NCBI GenBank assembly: GCA_003427395.1
Contig: BFEA01000034.1
Coordinates: 1,269,927-1,333,926 of the forward strand
Length of the DNA stretch: 64,000 bases
Reading direction: 5' to 3'
DNA from: Chara braunii
Lineage: Eukaryota > Plantae > Charophyceae
Numbering within the stretch: the stretch's first letter is position 1; the number at the start of each line of letters is the position of its first letter. Positions 14,424 through 63,100 of the stretch are shown in pieces. The position numbers were made by a program, and so were the translations under genes. Below the pieces are notes generated by a model that saw only the letters and a program-made list of their open reading frames with translations, was not told the DNA's origin and ran no database searches.

Positions 14424-17400
14424 ATGACACACACAGTCAGGAACTCTCAATGCGTAGCCGCCGCTGCTGCCACCGCCTCCACTTCATCTGCTGCTTACAC
14501 CTCGTCCGCCGCTACCACGGCCTTCTCCCCCACCATGGCCCAATCATCCAGCATTGATATGTCCGGCATCCGCACCGACTCCGTCGACAGCATCGCCAGC
14601 AACCTCGCAGGCGAGCAAACACCAGCACCTGATGGCGCGACCGATCTCGCAACACTCCTCCACATGGTGACATCCGTCCACTCATCCATCGACGACATCA
14701 GAACATCGGTCTCCACCATCTGCGCTCGTGTGACCGCCATCGAAAATCAAACCCCTGCCATCCAGATCGTCACCACCATGTCCCCCTCCCCCACCTCGGG
14801 TGCGACCACCCTTCTTCCATCCTCTGCCTCCACATCCGCCGCCCTCTCCGCTAGTACGTCATCCACACCCCCGCCTTCATCCACCACCACCTCCACCATG
14901 GTCTCCCCACCACCCAAGACAACAACCCCCGCCGTCACACAGTCGTCGACCATTCGCCCCCACTCAAAACCTCTGTCGACTACATCCACTATCACTTCCA
15001 CCCACCCCACCTATACCCAGATCACTTCTGCACCACACGCCCTGTACCCCGGTCTTCCACTACTTCCACCAAACGTGCTCATTCCCGCCAACCCGCTGAC
15101 AATTTCACCCGGATTGACTCTTCCTCCCCTATGCTCGACTTCAATGCCCTCACGGCTACTGCCACCAAACTACACCAAGCCTTCTCCCTCCCAAACTGCA
15201 TTCTGCACCACTCACCCAGCCCACCTCGAAAAGCTCACGCCGGAGGAGTGAACTTACCTTTAGGAGAAGGGTGGTTGTTTCAGATGCCGACGATTAGGCC
15301 ATCAACAGACAAGCTGTCCAAATACCGCACAGCTCACACGTTAGGCACCTAGGTTTGCGGCCCCATAACCCGCCACTTCCGCATCCGTCACTCACGGTCC
15401 CTCCTCCACTTGAACACTGTCCCCATGATCACCACGAACCCGCCTCGACATTGATGACTAGTCCGCCGACCAACCCATCGGCGATGACCTCTATTCCACG
15501 GATGGCCCAGTTGGCATTGACAATTCGTTTGCCCCCCTCCCCACCCCACCCGGTGACGCACTTCCCACCGGATGATCCCCAGGCATCACCTGACGCCGTT
15601 CCCACTGGTACATGTTCCTCTACCCTTCTCCCGAATCCATCCTCCGTCACCTTCTCTGAGGTTGTTGAGGAACAATCCCGACATGATCGGCTTGTCAGAT
15701 TAGGCATCGGACAACGTTGCCTCAAGGCCATTATCTCCACCGCCTACTCATGTCCGCTTCCAACTCAGTTTATAGCCGCCACCCTTGGTGCGCCTACAAC
15801 CAAGTTTCGGGCCCTCCTTGACATTGGAGCTACCGCTAACTTAATCATTGACGCGCGTGTCTGAAAAGCCTGTCTCACCTCTATCGGTTACAACTCCCCA
15901 ATTACCATTCGTCTAGGAGACAAAGACATCGCTGTCGTAGTAGACCGCACGGTTCCCGAGACCACCATGACTGTCGGGACCCTCCGCAGTCAGGCCTCAT
16001 TCTATGTCATGCACTTGATGTGCGGCATCGTTTTGGGAACACCTAGGTTGGACCACTACATGCCATACGCGTTCCACCCCAGCTTCTTCCGCCTCACCAA
16101 TCCCCCCGACACGCGCATCGACATCCCCTATTTCTCCCACCCTGCCTCCCAAAACTCCGTCACTCCCCACCAGGTTCTCCACATGGCCCGTCATAACCCC
16201 AACTCCATTTACTACTGCCTTGTCCTTGATCGCGAACGTCCCGAGGACTTGCTCCCTACGGACAAACCCGATCAAGCTCCCCCCTCCGACCCCGCCCTCA
16301 CCTCCATCCTCAACGAGTTCAAAGACGTTTTTTCCCGAGGCCTTGCTTGCCAGATTACCCCCGGATCGTGGTGTCTCATACCATTGATCTGGAACCCGGC
16401 CACTCTCCGCCGTGCCGCCCTCCATACCAACTCTCCGTCCCGGTAGCCAAAGAAATGAAGTGCCAACTCAATGAACTCCTTGAAAAAGGATTCATTAAGC
16501 CAAGCTTCTACCCCTTCGGTACAAGTTGCCTTTTCGTAAAGAAAGGTGGAACCTTAGAACTAAGGATGTGCAGAGACTACTGTGGCTTGAATTTCAAGAA
16601 CAAGTACCCCTACCTCGGATCTCTGAGCTTCTTGATCGCCTCTGTGGAGCCAAATATTTTACCAAGATTGACCTCCACAGCGTCTTCCACCAGATCCGAA
16701 TCCGCGAGGAGGACACCCACAAGACTGCATTATGTTCTCGCTTCGGGCACTATGAGTTCCTCGTGATGTCCTTCGGACTCACCAACGCCCCCACCACGTT
16801 CCAATCCACCATGAATCACATATTCCACGACCTCCTCGAAGTCTGTGTCGTCGTCTACCTTGATGATATCCTTGTCTATAGCCCCACCTTGGAATCCCAC
16901 CTTCAGCACCTTCGCCAAGTCCTCTCTATCCTCAAAGAGCAAAAATTATACTCCAAGCTCAACAAGTGTACCTTTGCTGCCTCTAGGGTAGAATACCTTG
17001 GCCACATCGTTTGTGCTGAAGGAATCCGCATGGACCCCTCAAAAGTCAACGTCCTCGTTGAGTACTCCCTGCCCAATACCCTACTCCAACTACGCTCATT
17101 CCTCGGCCTTGCCAACTATTACCGCCCCTTCATCTTCAACTTCTCTGACATCTCTTACCCACTCCATGAACTCACACGCAAGGACGAGCCCATCAATTGG
17201 AATGACTGCCGCCAAAACACCTTCCACTTCCTCAAACAAATCATCACCACGGCCCCATCCTCGAGATTGCTGACCATTCTCGACATTTCTACGTTACCAC
17301 TGACGCATCCGACTTCGCTATTGGAGCTGTCCTCTCGCAACATTTTCCTCGCAACACCTCCGAAACCCCCTCCATCAAAGACTCCCGCACCCACCCCGAG

Positions 17401-18941
17401 GCTCCACCCGACAAATACCCTATTGCCTTTGCAAGCAAGAAGCTCTTTCCCGCGGAGGTGAACTTCCCCTCCAACGAGAAGGAAATCATTGCCGTGATTC
17501 ACGCCCTGAAAGTTTGGCGCCCGTACCTCGACGGACAATACTTCAAGCCCGCTGGTTAGACTTTCTTGCCCAATTCACCATTCGCCACACCCTCGACAAA
17601 AGCAACCGCGTTGCCAGTGCCCTCTCTCGACGGCCCGACCACAAACGCACCTAGAAAGTCTACGTCACCATGACTCATATCCAACTCCTCCCATCACTCC
17701 ACCACTGCTACACCCACAACTACCTCTCTTGCCCGGATTTCTCAACAATCTACAACAAACTTTGTGACCTTGACCCAGTCCCGACTACTCCCTTCACGAC
17801 CAACTTCTTTACATCGACACCAAAGGCACTCGCCGACTTTGCATCCGCGACGCACGTGGCCTCCATACCCAGCTCTTGGCCGAACACCACGACGCCAAGA
17901 CTGCGGGACACCTCGGCTTTCAGAAAACCTTCGACACCATCTCCTGGCTACTTCTACTGGCCTTCACTACTCCCCGACGCCAAAGCTTACATTCGCTTAT
18001 GCCCCATATGTCAAGCCGTCAACCCTTCGAACCGGGCCTAACCCGGCAAGTTATAGTTGTTGCCTATTCCCTCTCACCATTGGCAGTCCATCTCTATGGA
18101 CTTTGTGTGCGGTCTCCCCAAGATTGACCGCAACCATGCCTGCATCTACGTCACCGTATGTCGCTTGACCAAATGCACGCTCTTCGTCCCTTGCACTACT
18201 TCACACCACGCCAAAGACATTGCCACTCTCTTCTTTGATCATGTTGCACTCCATCACGGCCTCCTTGAGAATATCATCAGCGATCGTGATCCGCGGTTTC
18301 TCTTGCAATTCTGGAAACACCTTTTCAAAGCCTACGGAACCACACTCAAGTATAGCACTGCATTCCACCCTCAGACCGATGGACAAACTGAGAAGATAAA
18401 CGATACTTTCCAAAGAATCCTGCGGAAGTATTGTCATCCACACCAACACGTCTGGGACTAGTTGCTCATAGCTGTCGAGATTGCCTATGACAACGTCGTT
18501 TGCCCTTTCAGTGACATGTCTCCGTTCTACCTCGATCTTGGCTACCATCCTTGCTTACCCTCCAACTTCTTGCTTCTTTCACAACTCAACCCCTCCACCC
18601 CTTGCCCTTCTCTCAATGAATGGGTAGCAGCAATGAACATACTCCTCAGAGAAGCCTCCGAAGTTGAACAAACGCAAGAACAACAAGCCAACAAGACCAA
18701 CAAACATAAACGTGCCGTGTCATTCAAAGTAGGGGACAAAGTCTGCCTCTCTGCCAAATGCTTTGAACCCGATCATGGCTTGTCCAAGAAACTCCCGAAC
18801 AAGTGGCTCAGACCCTTCCCCATCACTGAACAAACCTCCCACGTCAATTACAAGCTCCAACTCCCTGCTGATGTGAGTTGTGTCCACCCTGTCTTCCACG
18901 TAGAATACCTAAAAGAAATCCACATGGGAACCTCTTGCTAA
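14424..18941 (+). mobile_element. Decayed Ty3/Gypsy internal region (Gypsy-2): Ser/Thr-rich gag-like ORF, PR, RT, RNase H, IN
   Basis: FRALLDIGAT (~15805), KIDLHS, VYLDDIL, FLGLANYYR, SMDFV, ISDRD, HPQTDGQTE and HPVFHVEYLK. No chromodomain is visible. Confidence 0.92.
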
Positions 18942-21644: not shown

Positions 21645-24600
21645 GTCAGACCGTCCACTTCGGGTCAATGACAGGGCCAGCTCCTAAAGCAACGAACCCC
21701 TGCCCCGGATGGCTCCTAGAGAGGAGCCCCAATTACTAGGAGTAGACATTTCCCTATACTCCGATTGGGTTTTGACTTAGACGGAAGAAGAATAAGATAG
21801 AGATAAGCACTGAGATCTCTTTGGACGAGTACAGAAAGAAAGTGTTGTTCGGGATAGAATGGGTTGTTCCTTGGAGATACTAAATCATTCTGACCCGCGC
21901 GCGTTATTTCTTATTTATAAGTTCACCGATAATGAGTTGAGTCAATTCTCATATATGAATCACCCTTCGGCTTTAAATGTCAAATAAGAGAGGCCTCTTA
22001 TCTTTATCTTCTTTTTCCACGAATTTCATTTTTTTGGGCACCCGTCGGTTCACCTTTCTCACTGTTTTCTTCTTTTGACACGCATATGGGTAAAGTGGAA
22101 GGAAAGTGAACATTCCCATCATTCCTTGAGCAAGCATAATACTGATCACTTCTCACATGCATCCATTTACCCACCTGCACAACCAAACGGAAGCAACAAC
22201 CCAAGATCATCCATACCTCAACCAAAGTCAGCCCCCCTTCACATGCATGACATCACACACTTTACTCTACCTTCTCCCTTAATCCAAGCAAGGTCATGCA
22301 AGGTGTGGGTTCACACAGGTGTGTAAGGGAAGGTGAGTCACAACTGACCTTGAGTGAAGTAGAAACAGCTCACTCAAGAAAGCCAAATACTCTTTCAAAA
22401 AAAATTGGCCGTACAACTCACGTTGTGACCGTTCACAAAAGATAATCTGCATTTTCCTTCAGGTGTCACCACTCACACAGGGCCACTCGCTAGGACTGGT
22501 GCGAGATAGCCCTCAAGGACGGTGCTCTCACTTTCAAGTCCCATGTGGTCCCACTACAGTCCCAGCGGCACCTCGACCCCCCAAGAAACCTCCACCAATT
22601 ATCAAGTCCGATCATCAAATGTCTGCTACGATACTTGTTTCAGTCTCAATCCCCACTCTCTTGGTCCCAATTTGGGTCCCAAGCGGCTCCACGCTGCTGC
22701 CGCACCACCAAATGATCATCCAAAATGTAAATCTGAATCGTGGCGCTCATCCAATCATTTACAGTGCCCCCGACGTCAATGCAGCAGTGCTACACCAAAA
22801 TTAGCCACACCGCCAAGTACCATGCCAAACAATCACCGCCGCAGATTCAGAACCCTTCGGTGAAAACCTCCACCAGCCGCGCCGCGCAATTTCGACAGCA
22901 ACACACCTCCCTTCAAAACGCTGTCAAATATAATGCCGCTAAAAAGAATCACTGCTGCGCCACACAATCCAGGCAGCACCTCCTTTCAAAAGTACAGCGG
23001 CGCAGCCTCCCTCTCAAAATCCCTTGCCACCACACAGGCTGTCGGGCAGCACCTCCCCGTCGTGGGCCCCTCGCCGCACGATCCAATCCTGCCTCAGCCT
23101 CACGGCTACAGCCTCCCCTCAGGCCTACAGCACAAGCACAAATGTGGGGCTAGAAGCTCCTAGTCTTCAGCTATGGCTGCCTCTCTCCTCCTCCTCCAAG
23201 TGCTTCTGCAGACCTCCAGCACTTTACCTCGCTACATCAGCAGCCAGCCAGCATCTACTTCAAGTAGAATGCCCCAACAGCATTGCCACAAGTGTGCGGC
23301 AGCTGGGTGGCAAGTTGGCTTTTATAGCTGGCTGAAGGCATGTGGGCAGCTGCCTTGCCCACAGCCAGACAAAATTTCGTCAGGGCTCCTGGCCCTTGAT
23401 CTAAATCAATGGCCAGGAGCTCTGTGCCTTGGTTTCCCTAGGGAACCAGGGTCATCAGTTCCCTGGAGCACCTGGCCATTTTCCCAGGCCAGGTGCTTCT
23501 AGAAATGGCTGTACTCAACCATTTCAGGACTGCTGTTCAACTGAACAGATGCAGTCCCATCAGCCCTTAAAAGCTTCTGGGGCGGCCACATTTGTGGCCG
23601 TTACCTTTCTTTACCTCCTCTTTTTCTCTCATGTATATATCCTGAACCCGCGGCCACATACGTGGTTGTTGCTTACTTTTTCCTTCCCTACCTCTTTTTC
23701 TTTCTTTCTTTTTCTTTTTTCTCCCCCTAACCCCTCGTTTCCTTGTGCAGGGGCAGCCCAGCTCGTTTTCCAAAACGGGCTGCCTTCCTAGTCATTTCGC
23801 AGAGCCTAACTACAGTGAGGCTCAAAGGGGTTGTCTCCCCCTGCCCGCGCCTGTATCTGGGCCAAATAAGTGCCAAAGACAGGCGTGTGGCTTATGAGCT
23901 CCCTCCCTCTCTCTCTCCCTCTAGGTCCCGACAGCCACGGTCGTTGCCAGCGTCGAGCGAGCTGCTGTGAAAGCCTTCAGAAAGAGCCCAATTGATGCCA
24001 CAAAAATGTTCGTTCGACCACTAAGGAATGCCCCGTCGTTCCTCACAAACAGGAACCCCCCCAGGGCGTGTGCAGAGAGTCCCTGGTAACTTCGAGTGCA
24101 AGGCTCAACCCCCAGGCTCGGAATGTAGCCGCATCCTGCGGCAAATTCATTCCAACCAAAATTATAGTCCGTTCGTTGAAAATGAACGGACACTTATTTA
24201 TTTATTTATTTATTTCTTTTTCCCGAAAAAATCTAAAACAGATCTAAGAGAAAAAAAATCTAAAAAATAAAAAACAAAAACAAAAAAAATAAAAACAAAT
24301 CTTACCTTTCTCACAAACGGCTGCCCGTTGTTTCGGGCGCCTGCAGTGATTCTGGGGACTGTAAGTCCACCTTACTTCTGATAGCGCCATATGGCGCTTC
24401 ACTTTTAGTTTTAGTTCAATTTATTTTTTTTCCTTTTTGTAGCGGAAAATTCATTCCAACCGAACGGGCACTACACCGGTTTAAAAAACAAAATCTAGAA
24501 ATACAAAAAAGAAAACGGTTGCCCGTTCAAATGATTTTTATATGTTTTTAGGTGTATGCGTGTCACTCTCGTGCATGGCCATGCAGATCAGCGCGGCCCG

Positions 24601-57237: not shown

Positions 57238-58759
57238 CTGGGAACCGGACGGACCCTTCGTACCCCAGGACCAACCTCCGCCAGGAACACGAGTTTCCTA
57301 GTGGGCACCACCGATAGTTGAAGTGAGGCTTTCCCGATGTTGATTTTGCCATATACACATCTGATTGTGCTCCCCTGGTCCGCGGCGCACCGACCCCCGC
57401 CCCCGGACCCCGGCACCACCACCATCGACCCCCGCCCCTGGCACCAGCGCCCCCGGAGTGACCCGCGCCCTCGGAGTGACTCGCGCCCCCGGAGTGACCC
57501 CGCCCCGCCCCCCCCCCCCCCCAACCCAGGCCCGTATGCGATTCCCCCCCCCCCCGACCCGCAACCACCCAGAAATTGGGAAAAATGGAGTTTGGCCCAA
57601 AAGACCTGCGGTGGCGCTGCGCACCCGACCAAGTTTTCCTTTTTCTTTTTTTGTTTGTTTCAACCCCTCTCCCCCCGGGGTTGAGGGTCCCACCCCCGGC
57701 GGCCCTGCACCCTGCCGGTGATCAGGTGTCGGGGGGTGACAACCTTGAATCATGGCCATGATCGTCAATCGCCATCTTCTACCCTCTTGCTTCCCTTCTC
57801 TTCCCTCCGTCATTCTCGCCCATCTAATCCCTGCATCCTCAGACCACCATGATGATCATTGTGATCCCTGGATCCTCTGTCCTCCTGCTCTACTATTCTC
57901 GCGTATTGCAACATCCCCCCCCCCCCCGTTTTCCCCCTTCTCTCTCTCTCTCTCTCAATACACACGCCATCGTCTTCATCATTATCATCGTCATCACCGG
58001 TGACCCATTCTTCTCCCACCGGTGACCCATTCTTCTCCCAATTGCATCGCAGCGACGTGTCAATCACATGCTGCCTCTTGTCTGCAATCAATTCGTATGT
58101 TGAGAAAGGGAAAATGAGTTGAAATGAAAAGGAAAAAAGGAAGGGGAAAAAAGGGGAATTGAGTATCTGCAACATCAGGTGGAGGAGGCCATAGCCATTG
58201 ATTGGTCAATGATTATGATTGATAAATGAATTGTAGTTGATCGTCGATCTCAGATCAGCCATTGGTCGGCGCTCAACCATCAAGAATGGCCATGGATTCG
58301 GGATGAGTCATTTGATTAGCCATGTATATATAGACATAGATATAGATATGTACATATATATATATCGGGCAGCTCTGTTTGGCTATATATTGCACAACTT
58401 CGTTAGCACCCTGCTACGTTTTTCTCCGGTCAGTTTGAGCGGCAGTGGTCGGGGCCGTCGCCACGCGGCCATGCTGTGCCTCTACACTAGTGGTGTGCCC
58501 GGAGTGTATTTTTTGGATGTGACAGACGTTTGTTTAGGGGTGTTTTGCTTGCTTGTGATTGGGTGTGAACCGACAGTCTGTAGAGTTTTCCATTTGGTGT
58601 GGGTGAGTGATAGTCTGCTTTGATTTTCGTCACCAGGTACCTTGAGGGCAGTGGTCGGTGCGCACCTCAGGGTATCAATTGTCGGGCACTCGTTGATGCT
58701 TAACCAAAGTCGGGGTTAAGGTGGATTATCACTTGCAGTGTAATCAGTTAGGGGATTCT

Positions 58760-58819
58760 GCAGACTGTTGAGGGTTCAGCCTCCTGATGAGTCGGTGAAA
58801 CTTTGACGAAACAGTTTGT
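58760..58819 (+). ncRNA. Type III hammerhead ribozyme
   Basis: Stem III GCAGACTGT/ACAGTTTGT, GUU triplet ending 58769, stem I GAGG/CCTC, CTGATGA at 58784-58790, stem II GTCGG/TTGAC and GAAA at 58808-58811. Confidence 0.88.
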
Positions 58820-58952
58820 CACAACCCCTCGTTTGTTGTCCTCTTCTCCCTCTCTGCCTGCGGTGTATCAGTTGTCGGGCAGTTGTTGATGCTTAACCAC
58901 AGTCGGGGTTAAGGTGGATTATGACTTACAGTGTACTCAGTTAGGGGATTCT

Positions 58953-59012
58953 GGAGACTGTTGAGGGTTCAGCCTCCTGATGAGTCGATCAAACTCCGAC
59001 AAAACAGTTTGT
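58953..59012 (+). ncRNA. Second type III hammerhead, core mutated (GAAA to AAAA)
   Basis: Same fold, with CTGATGA at 58977-58983. Confidence 0.8.
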
Positions 59013-59719
59013 CATAGCCACTCGTTTGTTATCCTCTTCTTCATCTCTGCCCACAGTTTAGCGGGCAACTCTGTTTGACGATATATACGACGAAACAGTT
59101 TGTCACAGCCCCTCGTTTGTTGTCCTCTTCTCCCTCTCTGCCTACGGTTTACCGGGCAGTTCTNNNNNNNNNNNNNNNNNNNNNNNNNNNNNNNNNNNNN
59201 NNNNNNNNNNNNNNNNNNNNNNNNNNNNNNNNNNNNNNNNNNNNNNNNNNNNNNNNNNNNNNNNNNNNNNNNNNNNNNNNNNNNNNNNNNNNNNNNNNNN
59301 NNNNNNNNNNNNNNNNNNNNNNNNNNNNNNNNNNNNNNNNNNNNNNNNNNNNNNNNNNNNNNNNNNNNNNNNNNNNNNNNNNNNNNNNNNNNNNNNNNNN
59401 NNNNNNNNNNNNNNNNNNNNNNNNNNNNNNNNNNNNNNNNNNNNNNNNNNNNNNNNNNNNNNNNNNNNNNNNNNNNNNNNNNNNNNNNNNNNNNNNNNNN
59501 NNNNNNNNNNNNNNNNNNNNNNNNNNNNNNNNNNNNNNNNNNNNNNNNNNNNNNNNNNNNNNNNNNNNNNNNNNNNNNNNNNNNNNNNNNNNNNNNNNNN
59601 NNNNNNNNNNNNNNNNNNNNNNNNNNNNNNNNNNNNNNNNNNNNNNNNNNNNNNNNNNNGATATATATATATATATAAAGGTATAGAGATGGATAATATA
59701 ATTATGAAAATGATAATGA

Positions 59720-60143
59720 TAATAATATGGGTTAAGTCGACGTACGGCCCAGACGGACCGGGCCAGACGAACAGGGGGGGGTCCGTCCGGCAAAACCAGA
59801 CGAGCCAAAAAACATCCCAAGATTTTTTATTTTTTTTATTTTTAAGATGGGGTTGGAGTGCGCTTAGTGAGAGGAGCCCGAATCCGCAAAGAAACTTGTG
59901 AAAGTCATGTGCAGTGGGGGGAGTGGGGGTGGGTGGGGGGGGGGGGGGGGGAGGGGGGGATTTGTCAAGGGGGTAAAAGGTTGTGTTGTAGCAGCTAGTC
60001 CGCTGAGGGGACTGGCTATTGACAGTACAAGAAGAAGAAGAAGAAGAGGAAGAAGAAAGGAGCAGACTGAAAAAAAAAAAAAAAACAGGCATTTGACCAC
60101 TCACGCAAACGAAGTCATATGGCGGGAGATTTGAGTGTCAAAG

Positions 60144-60186
<43 letters not shown>

Positions 60187-63100
60187 GACACAAGTGTCAA
60201 AGTCTCTCTCTCTCTCTCTCAGACACACACACAGTGTCACACACTTGTGGACATGCTGATCTCATTCGGAATCAGCGTCGCAGCCCTCATCCTCAGATGG
60301 TTGTTCGCTGCAGTCAACTGATTTCGGGTCATCCTCCACGACCGTCTTGCGCTTGAGGCGCTGTTTCTTTTTTTTAACCGGTGTAGTGGCCGTGTCGGTC
60401 TTCTGCTTTCGCGGTCTTCCACGAGGACGTTTTGGCTGTGCAGGAGCGTCCTGTGATGGCTCCTTTCTCTTCCTGCCCACTCGGTTCACCCATAGGTTGT
60501 CATGCTGGACATCCTCCCTCATTGCGGGGAATTCCGGTATCTTCTCCTCGGACTCCGGAAACTCCGCTGGCCGGGGCCTGCGTGTGTAGACTGCTGTCGT
60601 TGTGGGATGGGGCTCGTCTTCGCGGGCCGTATCGACCTCGCCGTGCTGCATCTTCGGTTGCGCCAATCCTTCCCCCTCCTCTTCCTGCTGCATTTCCTCT
60701 TCCTCCCCGCCTTGCACCGTGCCTTCCTCTTCTTCTTGGTGCTCCATCTCCTCTTCCTCCTGTGGTTGCGCCATGCCCTCTGCCTCTTCTTCCTGTTCCA
60801 TGTAATCTCCCACCTCAGCCTGGTGCTCCTCCTCTTCTCCTTCTTCCTCAACCCCCAATGCCTGATTGATCTGCTGTTGGTGCTCCTTGGCTTGTTTGAG
60901 ACCTCTCTCGATCTCTCTCCGAGTCTGGATAGGTGCACGACGGGCCTCCTCCTCCATCATACGTTTGTTGACGAGTTCGGTCTCCCGGTTAGCCATAGCC
61001 TTGGCACGGTTCGCATCCTCATCTTCGTCCACCCTCGTTTCCAGCAACATCTCAACATCCGTGTCTAGCCGTGCGAACTCGACATCAGATTGCGGATTGT
61101 ACAGTGCAGTTTCCCTTACCCCGGGCTCCGTCGCTGTCGGGCGTGGCTCTTCTCTGCGTTGTCGTCCGGTCCGCCTCCTTCCGACGTACGTCGTGCCTGG
61201 GACGGACGTCTCTGGTCGTAGCTCGAAATCGGAGTCATCGTCGTCATCCTCTTCGCTGCCACATGAGTCCTCCGATAATCCACACTTCCCCTTCCACAAC
61301 TCGTCATCCAAATCACTGTCATCCGTGAGCTCTTTGTCCTTGTCCTCGAGATTTTTTGGAACCCTTCCCTTCGGAGTCTTTGTGAGCCTCCGTTCCCGTA
61401 CAAGTTCCTCCTCTGTCTTCTCAGCCTCATCCTCGGGCCCCTTCGACACCGATCCATCGTTCTCTTCAGGCTCCGGGGCGGGCTCGACGAAGTCACACCA
61501 CAAGTCCACAAATCCGTTGTTCTTAGTCTTTGGAACATGCAACGCAATAGCTGCATGTTTCAGTGTATGTACACTAGCTTCGCCAAGCTTTCTGGCGACA
61601 ACTTGTTCCTTGGTTTGGAATGGATGAAGTCCATGGAAGCCCAGTTCCTCTCCGCCGGCGATGCGGTGCTCCACATGCCCATAACCTTGATTGCAATCTT
61701 CTGCAATTCGGGCACATCGCCCCCGTGTGCTGCCCACCATTCCGACGGTGTCTTCTTGTCAACATCTGCCTTCGCTGTGGGGTCCCACATCTTCGTGTCA
61801 TTCCTTTTCGGGGCGTTCCTTGTAGGTTTGTTGTGGAACTCGTTCAGGTCACTCCAAATGTCAAGGTGCGCTTGCCCTTTCCATTCACCTCCAACCTGCC
61901 TCGAGAGAAAGCGCATGGCATTTGCACAAGCGCACTGTCTTGGTCATGCAACCACCTCGGTTCTCTCCTGCGCGGGTCCAAAAGAAACGCTGCTGTGTGG
62001 ACGGGCTGCCGCATCATCTTCATGCGTTCTTTGACTTTCTCCATCACACTCGCCCGCTGTTCCACCGTAAGAACAACATGGCTAAGCTTCCTCTCTATCA
62101 TGTCGTCATACTCGACAAGGTTTGTAGGACCGGTACCGTCCTGATCCATCCGCCTCAAGAGGCCGAACACGGGCTCCATCACCTCAACCACCTTGTTCAA
62201 CCCCGTCCACCAATCATCACTCCTCAATGTGAAGTACACTAGATCCGATCTGGCCCTCAACTTCGACGTGGACCATCGGATTGCATTCCACTTTACTGCA
62301 TTCCGACCGTTGACCATGTCCTTCAACACCGCCCTCCTGTCGTATATCCTCTCCAACATTTGGTAGACTGACCCGAAGCGCACCTCCGTGGGTCGAAGAA
62401 GAGACAGCGAATCGTCCACTGTCATCATCAGACTGTTTGTGCTGTGGTGATTTGTGATGAACTTGATGATTGTGTGGCCCCTCTTAACGGTGTGCTTCAC
62501 CCAATCGAGTTTGCTGAGGTCGCGCAAGAGAAGGCTGTAGCAATGTGCAGCGCAAGGAACCCACGAAATCCTTGCTACCTCCTTGTCCGTTCGTCACTCC
62601 AGGATCTGAGCCGCCCTTTTGTTGACCTCCGCGTTGTCAGTGCAGATCGCATTGATTTGACGCAGTCCGATTTCCGTCATGATCTGCGCCCAAAGTTTCG
62701 TCAATGCAGGTCCGGTCTTCTTCCTCCCGGACATTGACAACGTCGCCACCAGAACCGCCCCATCCACCCCAGCTGCCAAGAAGTTCATCACGGGCCGCTC
62801 CCGACGATCGCTCGATCCGTCTGTGATGAAAGTACACCCGCTCACATCCCAACAAGTAGTCAACGGCTCCACCGTCTTCTGCACTCGCATGTACACAATG
62901 TCCAACATGACGGTCCTCATGTGGTTGAAGGAGGGCAGTTTCACCTACGGTCTTGACTTTGCCACCTGCAGGTACACTTAGTGGAGTTTCTGGGTGGTTT
63001 CGAAGTGCAGGAAGTTGAACGGGATCCCAGCACGAAACATGGCCTCCACCCATGCAATGTCGAGTTTCTTCTGCGCATCGTTGTCCACCCACCTCCTTAT

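Follow-up and report, generated by a model that had tools for sequence, protein, structure and literature searches.

A probable cluster of decayed, non-coding retroelement copies with type III hammerhead ribozymes in a (TA)n microsatellite of Chara braunii

The 64,000-nt stretch of the Chara braunii genome that was analyzed here in its full length (contig BFEA01000034.1; hereafter "the window") carries a short non-coding element with type III hammerhead ribozymes inside a (TA)n microsatellite. We read this locus as a head-to-tail cluster of decayed copies of a short non-coding retroelement, composed of three pieces in the same orientation with short TA runs between them—an 18-nt terminal fragment, a full-length copy, and a 5'-truncated copy (unit C)—and put the probability of this reading as a whole, including its layout and state of decay, at roughly two in three (0.68). 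All pieces lie on the forward strand. The left flank and insertion target, directly legible in the DNA, is an imperfect (TA)n microsatellite at 58325 to 58365 (period 2, 20.5 copies by Tandem Repeats Finder). It is followed at 58366 to 58390 by an 18-nt copy of the element's 3' terminus (CGGGCAGCTCTGTTTGGC, 58366 to 58383) and the run TATATAT, detected by pattern search and as a direct repeat with 59059 to 59086; this piece represents a copy with extreme 5' truncation or else a Penelope-style "tail". The full-length copy (58391 to 59081) comprises a 5' leader (58391 to 58514), an antisense arm (58515 to 58623), an apical region (58624 to 58715), two tandem units of 193 nt each named A (58672 to 58864) and B (58865 to 59057), and the 3' terminus. 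A transition-tolerant local alignment identifies the arm as a G/U-rich, diverged inverted copy of the hammerhead region at 58716 to 58826, while the apical region, which overlaps the start of unit A, is the apical part of a rod in the minimum free energy (MFE) structure of 58515 to 58826 and contains a local hairpin at about 58636 to 58675. A third unit starts behind unit B and stops after about 25 nt (59058 to 59087); alignment, direct repeat, and pattern search agree that this stub is the 3' terminus of the full-length copy (CGGGCAACTCTGTTTGACGA, 59062 to 59081), followed by TATATA. Unit C (59088 to 59163; BLASTN and alignment) starts within the 3' strand of stem II at CGACGAAAC and carries a terminus of its own (CGGGCAGTTCT), which enters an assembly gap of 496 N (59164 to 59659, read directly), beyond which a (TA)n microsatellite forms the right flank (59660 to 59677; period 2, 8.5 copies by Tandem Repeats Finder).

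The tandem at 193-nt spacing that an initial annotation of this DNA had described is borne out by Tandem Repeats Finder, which reports 58672 to 59051 as 2.0 copies of period 193 with 89% matches, and by a repeat search that returns the same two units; BLASTN likewise aligns units A and B (89% identical, 22 differences). The third partial piece was also correctly recognized: unit C is 95% identical to 58805 to 58867 of unit A over 63 nt (BLASTN) and lacks the cut site, and its 5' end falls within the ribozyme, as expected for a 5'-truncated retrocopy. The terminus motif (CGGGCARYTCTGTTTGRC) occurs at 58366 and 59062, each time followed by a TA run, and an incomplete third instance at 59153 to 59163 enters the gap. 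These two are the only full matches of the motif in a pattern search of the 64 kb (chance expectation 0.25). By alignment the motif is a variant of the first ~25 nt of the 193-nt unit, so that each piece ends slightly into a further unit. A similarity between 58364–58395 and 59061–59090 had been taken as a hint of a larger unit of ~700 bp. The match itself is real (28 nt at 58363 to 58390 and 59059 to 59086, 86% identity, 696 nt apart), but it does not mark a larger repeat: the 696-nt spacing is the length of the middle copy, and what recurs is the element's 3' terminus plus the TA run at successive insertion ends. BLASTN of the element against the 64 kb found no further copies. One other direct repeat in the left part of the element, the 15-nt GGCAGTGGTCGG recurring 206 nt apart, was rejected with an alignment score (39.5) within the range of shuffled sequences.

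Both complete units contain a hammerhead fold. Infernal cmscan with Hammerhead_3 (RF00008) returns full-model matches at 58762 to 58817 (hammerhead A, 42.4 bits) and 58955 to 59010 (hammerhead B, 36.8 bits), with E-values of 9.5e-8 and 3.7e-6 on an 866-nt stretch and of 7e-6 and 2.8e-4 window-wide (64 kb, both strands), which is far beyond chance. Hammerhead_3 is the best clan member for a topology with loop-capped stems I and II and an open stem III, confirming the proposed head-to-tail type III ribozymes. The scores of A, B, and a metagenomic relative described below (37.1 bits) are all under the RF00008 gathering score of 48.5, and the matches were found at an E-value threshold; a default Rfam scan at gathering thresholds lists no ribozyme in the window, and routine annotation would therefore miss this family. 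Neither the Hammerhead_3 scan nor a core pattern search found other hammerheads on either strand of the 64-kb window, and cmscan on both strands found no ribozyme of opposite polarity at the element. A core-pattern match at 23432 is unrelated and attributable to chance.

The two ribozymes differ in their state of preservation. Hammerhead A has all bases of the CUGAUGA and GAAA core segments, and its predicted cut lies after position 58769 at a GUU triplet, which is allowed under the NUH rule, GUC being the better substrate. Its stem III extends over 58760 to 58768 and 58811 to 58819, and its stem II has two G.U pairs where hammerhead B and the metagenomic relative have G-C. As an isolated 60-mer, A forms the hammerhead fold at -16.5 kcal/mol compared to an MFE of -18.6 kcal/mol, and for the corresponding 60-mer of B the MFE structure is the hammerhead fold itself. 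However, the "two full folds" of the initial annotation stand only as folds, because the catalytic core of B carries CAAAA (G12A, with A at 59001). Since G12 is required for hammerhead catalysis, hammerhead B is very probably dead. The sequence thus suggests a copy in decay, with B dead, C devoid of its cut site, and A retaining its core while its stem II is weakened and the antisense arm is predicted to mask it.

This arm had been overlooked in the initial annotation. When 58391 to 58864 is folded, the hammerhead pairs over a long range with sequence about 200 nt upstream, and the reverse complement of 58515 to 58623 aligns to 58716 to 58826 with a score of 67, compared to 25 +/- 4.6 (maximum 48.5) for composition-matched shuffles in the same transition-tolerant local alignment. 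The aligned columns comprise 30 G.U pairs but a single A.C mismatch in the plus-strand RNA (binomial ~3e-8). An A.C in the plus strand is a G.U in the other strand, and symmetric decay of an inverted repeat predicts equal counts; such a bias is missing from the 22 differences between units A and B (8 purine vs 6 pyrimidine transitions), which can only have originated in situ. The wobble bias suggests either that pairing has been kept at the RNA level on the plus strand or that a strongly strand-specific mutation process has acted at the RNA level. The duplex of the arm with unit A is predicted at -101 kcal/mol, and the plus strand of 58515 to 58826 folds into a near-continuous rod of -131.1 kcal/mol (z -6.7, none of 100 shuffles as good), compared to -71.2 kcal/mol (z -2.3) for the minus strand. 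Enforcing the hammerhead fold within this rod costs 28 kcal/mol, and when the full 693-nt RNA is folded, unit A is the partner of the arm and unit B takes no part in this pairing. As the rod is far more stable than the enforced hammerhead, these models predict that hammerhead A is thermodynamically masked in the unit-length RNA.

The idea that tandem self-cleavage would release a 193-nt circular monomer gains no support: the monomer between the cut sites folds no better than shuffled sequences (z +0.56, vs -6.7 for arm plus unit), and only one of the two ribozymes bounding it has an intact core. A rod with the ribozyme in one strand is reminiscent of hammerhead viroids, and a long imperfect hairpin could feed Dicer-like enzymes, so that the locus might be an endogenized viroid-like or satellite RNA or an inverted-repeat small-RNA locus with a relic hammerhead. 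We regard this origin as very improbable, given that an opposite-polarity ribozyme was not found, that the element has no match in a viral contig collection (0 matches), and that the microsatellite flanks, the 5'-truncated neighbor, and the shared terminus point to retroposition instead.

A single relative of the element was found. A 20-nt word taken from stem I and the core had 5 matches in a scan of metagenome contigs. Of these, 4 are chance matches that lack the rest of the ribozyme, while the remaining one, L004 (BFBZ01011546.1, 1534 nt), has a full Hammerhead_3 match with the triplet GUA and all core bases kept. A scan across prokaryote genomes produced 2 matches, both rejected as chance without the 3' half of the ribozyme. 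Compared to hammerhead A, the changes in L004 affect loops, the cut nucleotide, or helix positions whose pairing is kept, including one double-sided change from C-G to U-A in stem III. Across A, B, and L004 only, 94% of cells pair in the named structure, vs 39% to 54% with partners slid; with one double-sided change among three sequences the covariation is thin, and a shuffle control fails to separate it from chance. In the isolated 60-mers of A and L004, an alternative MFE helix (within 58770 to 58807 of the window and 567 to 604 of L004) joins GGGUU of stem I with AAC(C/U) of loop/stem II and beats the hammerhead by 2 kcal/mol in A. The loop 1 GUU and loop 2 AAC are kept in all three copies and could represent either a loop-loop contact or a competing fold.

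L004 also has an antisense arm of the same design. Its positions 72 to 199 are an inverted, wobble-rich match of 491 to 619 (score 73 vs 29 +/- 4) with a G.U to A.C ratio of 22:7 (one-sided p ~0.004), and the MFE structure pairs this arm with the hammerhead (z -1.6 for the plus strand vs +2.1 for the minus strand). The two arms are homologous: L004 14 to 180 aligns to the window from 58468 in the leader through the arm with a score of 88.5, compared to 50.3 +/- 8.1 (maximum 76) for shuffles. Judging from this comparison, the arm has been inherited with the element and did not come about by accident in one insertion. The first and last 86 nt of L004 are identical, indicating a cycle or tandem of 1448 nt with one hammerhead per unit. 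Two (CA)n runs lie at about 1010 to 1020 and 1310 to 1326 of this contig.

The differences between copies had initially been explained as CpG decay of an active ancestor with a GTC triplet. Some changes do conform to this pattern—CGAAA to CAAAA in B, CCGAC to TTGAC in A, and also positions 58859–58860 with TG in A and CA in B—but only ~6 to 7 of the 22 differences between A and B fall at CpG. An ancestral GTC is absent from the copies compared, with GUU in A and B and GUA in L004, both of which are permitted NUH triplets.

The element spans no open reading frame (ORF) able to encode an enzyme, and its organization supports the view of the initial annotation that it is a retrozyme-like or Penelope-style non-coding retroelement and not a gene. 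We propose that the element would be transcribed on the plus strand and its RNA copied by target-primed reverse transcription at TA repeats, with the reverse-transcribing enzyme supplied in trans, most likely by a Penelope-like (Chlamys/Naiad-type) element. Template jumps, or continued reading of a multimeric or circular template, may have given rise to the partial tandem and to the overhang at the terminus. The hammerhead would trim multimeric or read-through transcripts, and the arm would keep it off in unit-length RNA. We infer this mechanism from its fit with two published precedents: Penelope-like elements show 5'-truncated copies, partial tandems, a short tail, and microsatellite targeting (PMC8557442), and the short tandem hammerhead repeats of animal non-LTR (long terminal repeat) retrozymes are tied to Penelope-like elements (PMC7229834; bioRxiv 10.64898/2026.07.22.740005).

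The same features might be expected if the units were the pseudo-LTR or terminus of an autonomous Penelope-like element, with the coding part either hidden in the gap or lost by deletion. The partial tandem, tail-like piece, microsatellite target, and 5' inverted copy all fit published layouts of such elements, and hammerhead-bearing Chlamys types have been reported in Chara braunii itself (PMC8557442). However, the 496-N gap is followed immediately by (TA)n and is too small for an ORF of at least 3 kb unless its size is arbitrary, and no reverse transcriptase or GIY-YIG domain was found in the 30 window ORFs scanned for domains, except in a Ty3/Gypsy pol. The linked Penelope-type reverse transcriptase for which the initial annotation had suggested a search is therefore not present among these ORFs. 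The arm, moreover, is inherited as judged from its homologue in L004 and its 30:1 G.U bias and so is not a fresh inverted insertion, and the published hammerheads of Penelope-like elements are minimal type I variants (PMC7229834). On balance, we consider an autonomous Penelope-like origin of the units improbable.

Ty3/Gypsy pol remnants at 16526 to 18941 and 5763 to 6779 (both on the plus strand) consist of several broken ORFs with RVT_1, Integrase_H2C2, rve, and SH3_Tf2-1 domains; the only reverse transcriptase of the window belongs to the remnant at 16526 to 18941, and the ORF at 5763 to 6779 is a second integrase ORF 10 kb upstream of it. The nearest relatives of this reverse transcriptase are of the plant-type Gypsy group (45% to 58% identity), among them one Chara braunii protein at 54%. 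This kinship, the presence of Gypsy elements in the window, and the dimeric type III hammerheads would suit a plant-type LTR retrozyme, in which two hammerhead-bearing LTRs are mobilized by Gypsy machinery through a circular RNA. The locus nevertheless departs from the published features of these elements (PMC7229834): the units abut without an internal region and measure 193 nt compared to ~350 nt for the LTRs, and the ends lie in TA repeats and not at a 4-bp duplication. There is also no tRNA-Met primer binding site (TGGTATCAGAGC) within 3 mismatches in 58300 to 59200 and no polypurine tract, the plus strand between the ribozymes being pyrimidine-rich. GGTATCA, at the junction of the units, resembles a primer binding site but was not accepted as one for tRNA-Met. 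Having already failed on these defining features, the LTR retrozyme is hardly tenable as an explanation.

Several points weigh against a retroelement cluster mobilized by a Penelope-like partner. No autonomous partner was identified, and the Ty3/Gypsy remnant with the window's only reverse transcriptase lies 41 kb away from the element. The choice of partner is also loose since the preferred targets are (CA)n or (C)n for Chlamys elements and (TA)n for Naiads (PMC8557442). The microsatellite target hides any target-site duplication, and the 496-N gap conceals the right-hand part of the insertion. The 5' ends of the copies (58391 and 59088) do not coincide with the cut site and the 3' ends are ~80 nt away from it, so that the role of the ribozyme in the life cycle is not visible at this locus. 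Statements at the family level rest on two loci, the window and L004.

A last point of this kind is that the tandem of A and B could be a later duplication at the DNA level and not a product of reverse transcription. Carried further, this would make the element a single-hammerhead retroposon in which slippage or unequal exchange created a tandem irrelevant to RNA processing. The low number of units (2.0 copies) would fit such an event, as would the 11% difference between A and B with transitions that lack strand bias, which is what decay in situ would produce, the unremarkable fold of the 193-nt monomer, and the single hammerhead per 1448-nt unit in L004. On the other side, the 3' terminus already reads ~25 nt into a further unit, indicating that the template reached beyond a single unit, in keeping with a multimeric or circular one. 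We regard a secondary duplication of a single-hammerhead element as a rather unlikely explanation of the tandem.

Other features were noted in the window. Upstream of the element, an exact 22-nt sequence (CACCGGTGACCCATTCTTCTCC) is duplicated in tandem at 57995 to 58038, and on its downstream side lie a 44-nt G-run at 59914 to 59959 and (TC)n, (CA)n, and (AAG)n microsatellites within 60029 to 60220. A 492-aa ORF at 60262 to 61740 on the minus strand, 600 nt from the right TA tract, would encode a Glu/Asp/Lys-rich protein whose C-terminal tail is basic; it is without a Pfam match, and its exact sequence is absent from the protein collection, in which none of five window ORFs has an exact match. 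An AT-rich block (32% GC) at 6000 to 8310 contains tRNA-His(GUG) at 7333 to 7405 (plus strand) as well as fragments of bacterial-type large-subunit (LSU) rRNA at 7993 to 8307 and of the 3' end of small-subunit (SSU) rRNA at 7965 to 8101 (both minus strand); the block resembles an insertion of organelle DNA into the nuclear genome. Finally, a eukaryotic 25S/28S rRNA fragment (LSU_rRNA_eukarya, 43.9 bits, under the gathering threshold) at 31457 to 31986 on the plus strand sits in a region that the initial annotation had labeled a giant solo LTR.

Among known systems, type III hammerheads have been described in plant LTR retrozymes and type I hammerheads in animal tandem retrozymes and Penelope-like elements (PMC7229834). 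Our element resembles the metazoan non-LTR retrozymes in its short, non-coding hammerhead units arranged head to tail (150 to 450 bp in those elements; PMC7229834, bioRxiv 10.64898/2026.07.22.740005), in having no LTR, primer binding site, or polypurine tract, in its low-to-middling GC content, and in a presumed Penelope-like mobilization in trans. It differs from them in its type III ribozyme with a stable stem III of 7 to 9 bp instead of type I, in its streptophyte algal host, in comprising only two complete units plus fragments and no long array, and in a 193-nt monomer not predicted to be highly self-paired, the pairing being provided by an upstream arm outside the tandem unit. With plant LTR retrozymes (PMC4918200) it shares the type III ribozyme, the non-coding and non-autonomous nature, and the placement of the ribozyme in a strongly self-paired RNA, whereas LTRs, a tRNA-Met primer binding site, and a polypurine tract are missing, the ends lie in (TA)n, the units are far smaller, and insertion appears Penelope-like and not Gypsy-like.

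The Chlamys and PLE-X elements of Chara braunii and spike mosses, compared here by published description, likewise carry a hammerhead near the 3' end—"canonical" in two Chlamys subclades from these hosts—and show partial tandems, 5' truncation, a short tail, and insertion into microsatellites, in the case of Chara braunii even in the same host (PMC8557442). In contrast to our element, which encodes nothing, they encode a reverse transcriptase with or without GIY-YIG, and the targets reported for Chlamys are (CA)n or (C)n instead of (TA)n. Viroids of the Avsunviroidae type and satellite RNAs resemble it in that a type III hammerhead is locked in a rod-like or branched unit-length fold and cleavage needs a transient or multimeric state. 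Unlike them, our element exists as genomic DNA copies with hallmarks of retroposons and with a single ribozyme polarity, and its complementary arm would act as a wobble-rich decoy and is not a second ribozyme. A literature search did not turn up any charophyte element described as short, non-coding, and equipped with a type III hammerhead, though this search was weak, with "Chara" mostly matching "character".

Together, these features raise the tentative possibility, which for now we hold to be more doubtful than probable, of a distinct retrozyme class in streptophyte algae that would combine a Penelope-style, microsatellite-targeting mode of insertion with a type III hammerhead and a selected wobble-rich arm as its on/off lock. 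The design is unusual for a green alga, and the locus itself is a decayed, mostly dead copy. If such a class exists, its ribozyme would cut only in multimeric or nascent transcripts, and it would form a bridge between the Penelope-dependent retrozymes known from animals on the one hand and viroids and plant LTR retrozymes on the other. Its arm would be a naturally occurring case of a decoy strand built in to lock a ribozyme, and a type III hammerhead on a non-LTR, microsatellite-targeting mini-element in an early-diverging streptophyte would show that retrozyme styles are not cleanly split by ribozyme type or kingdom.

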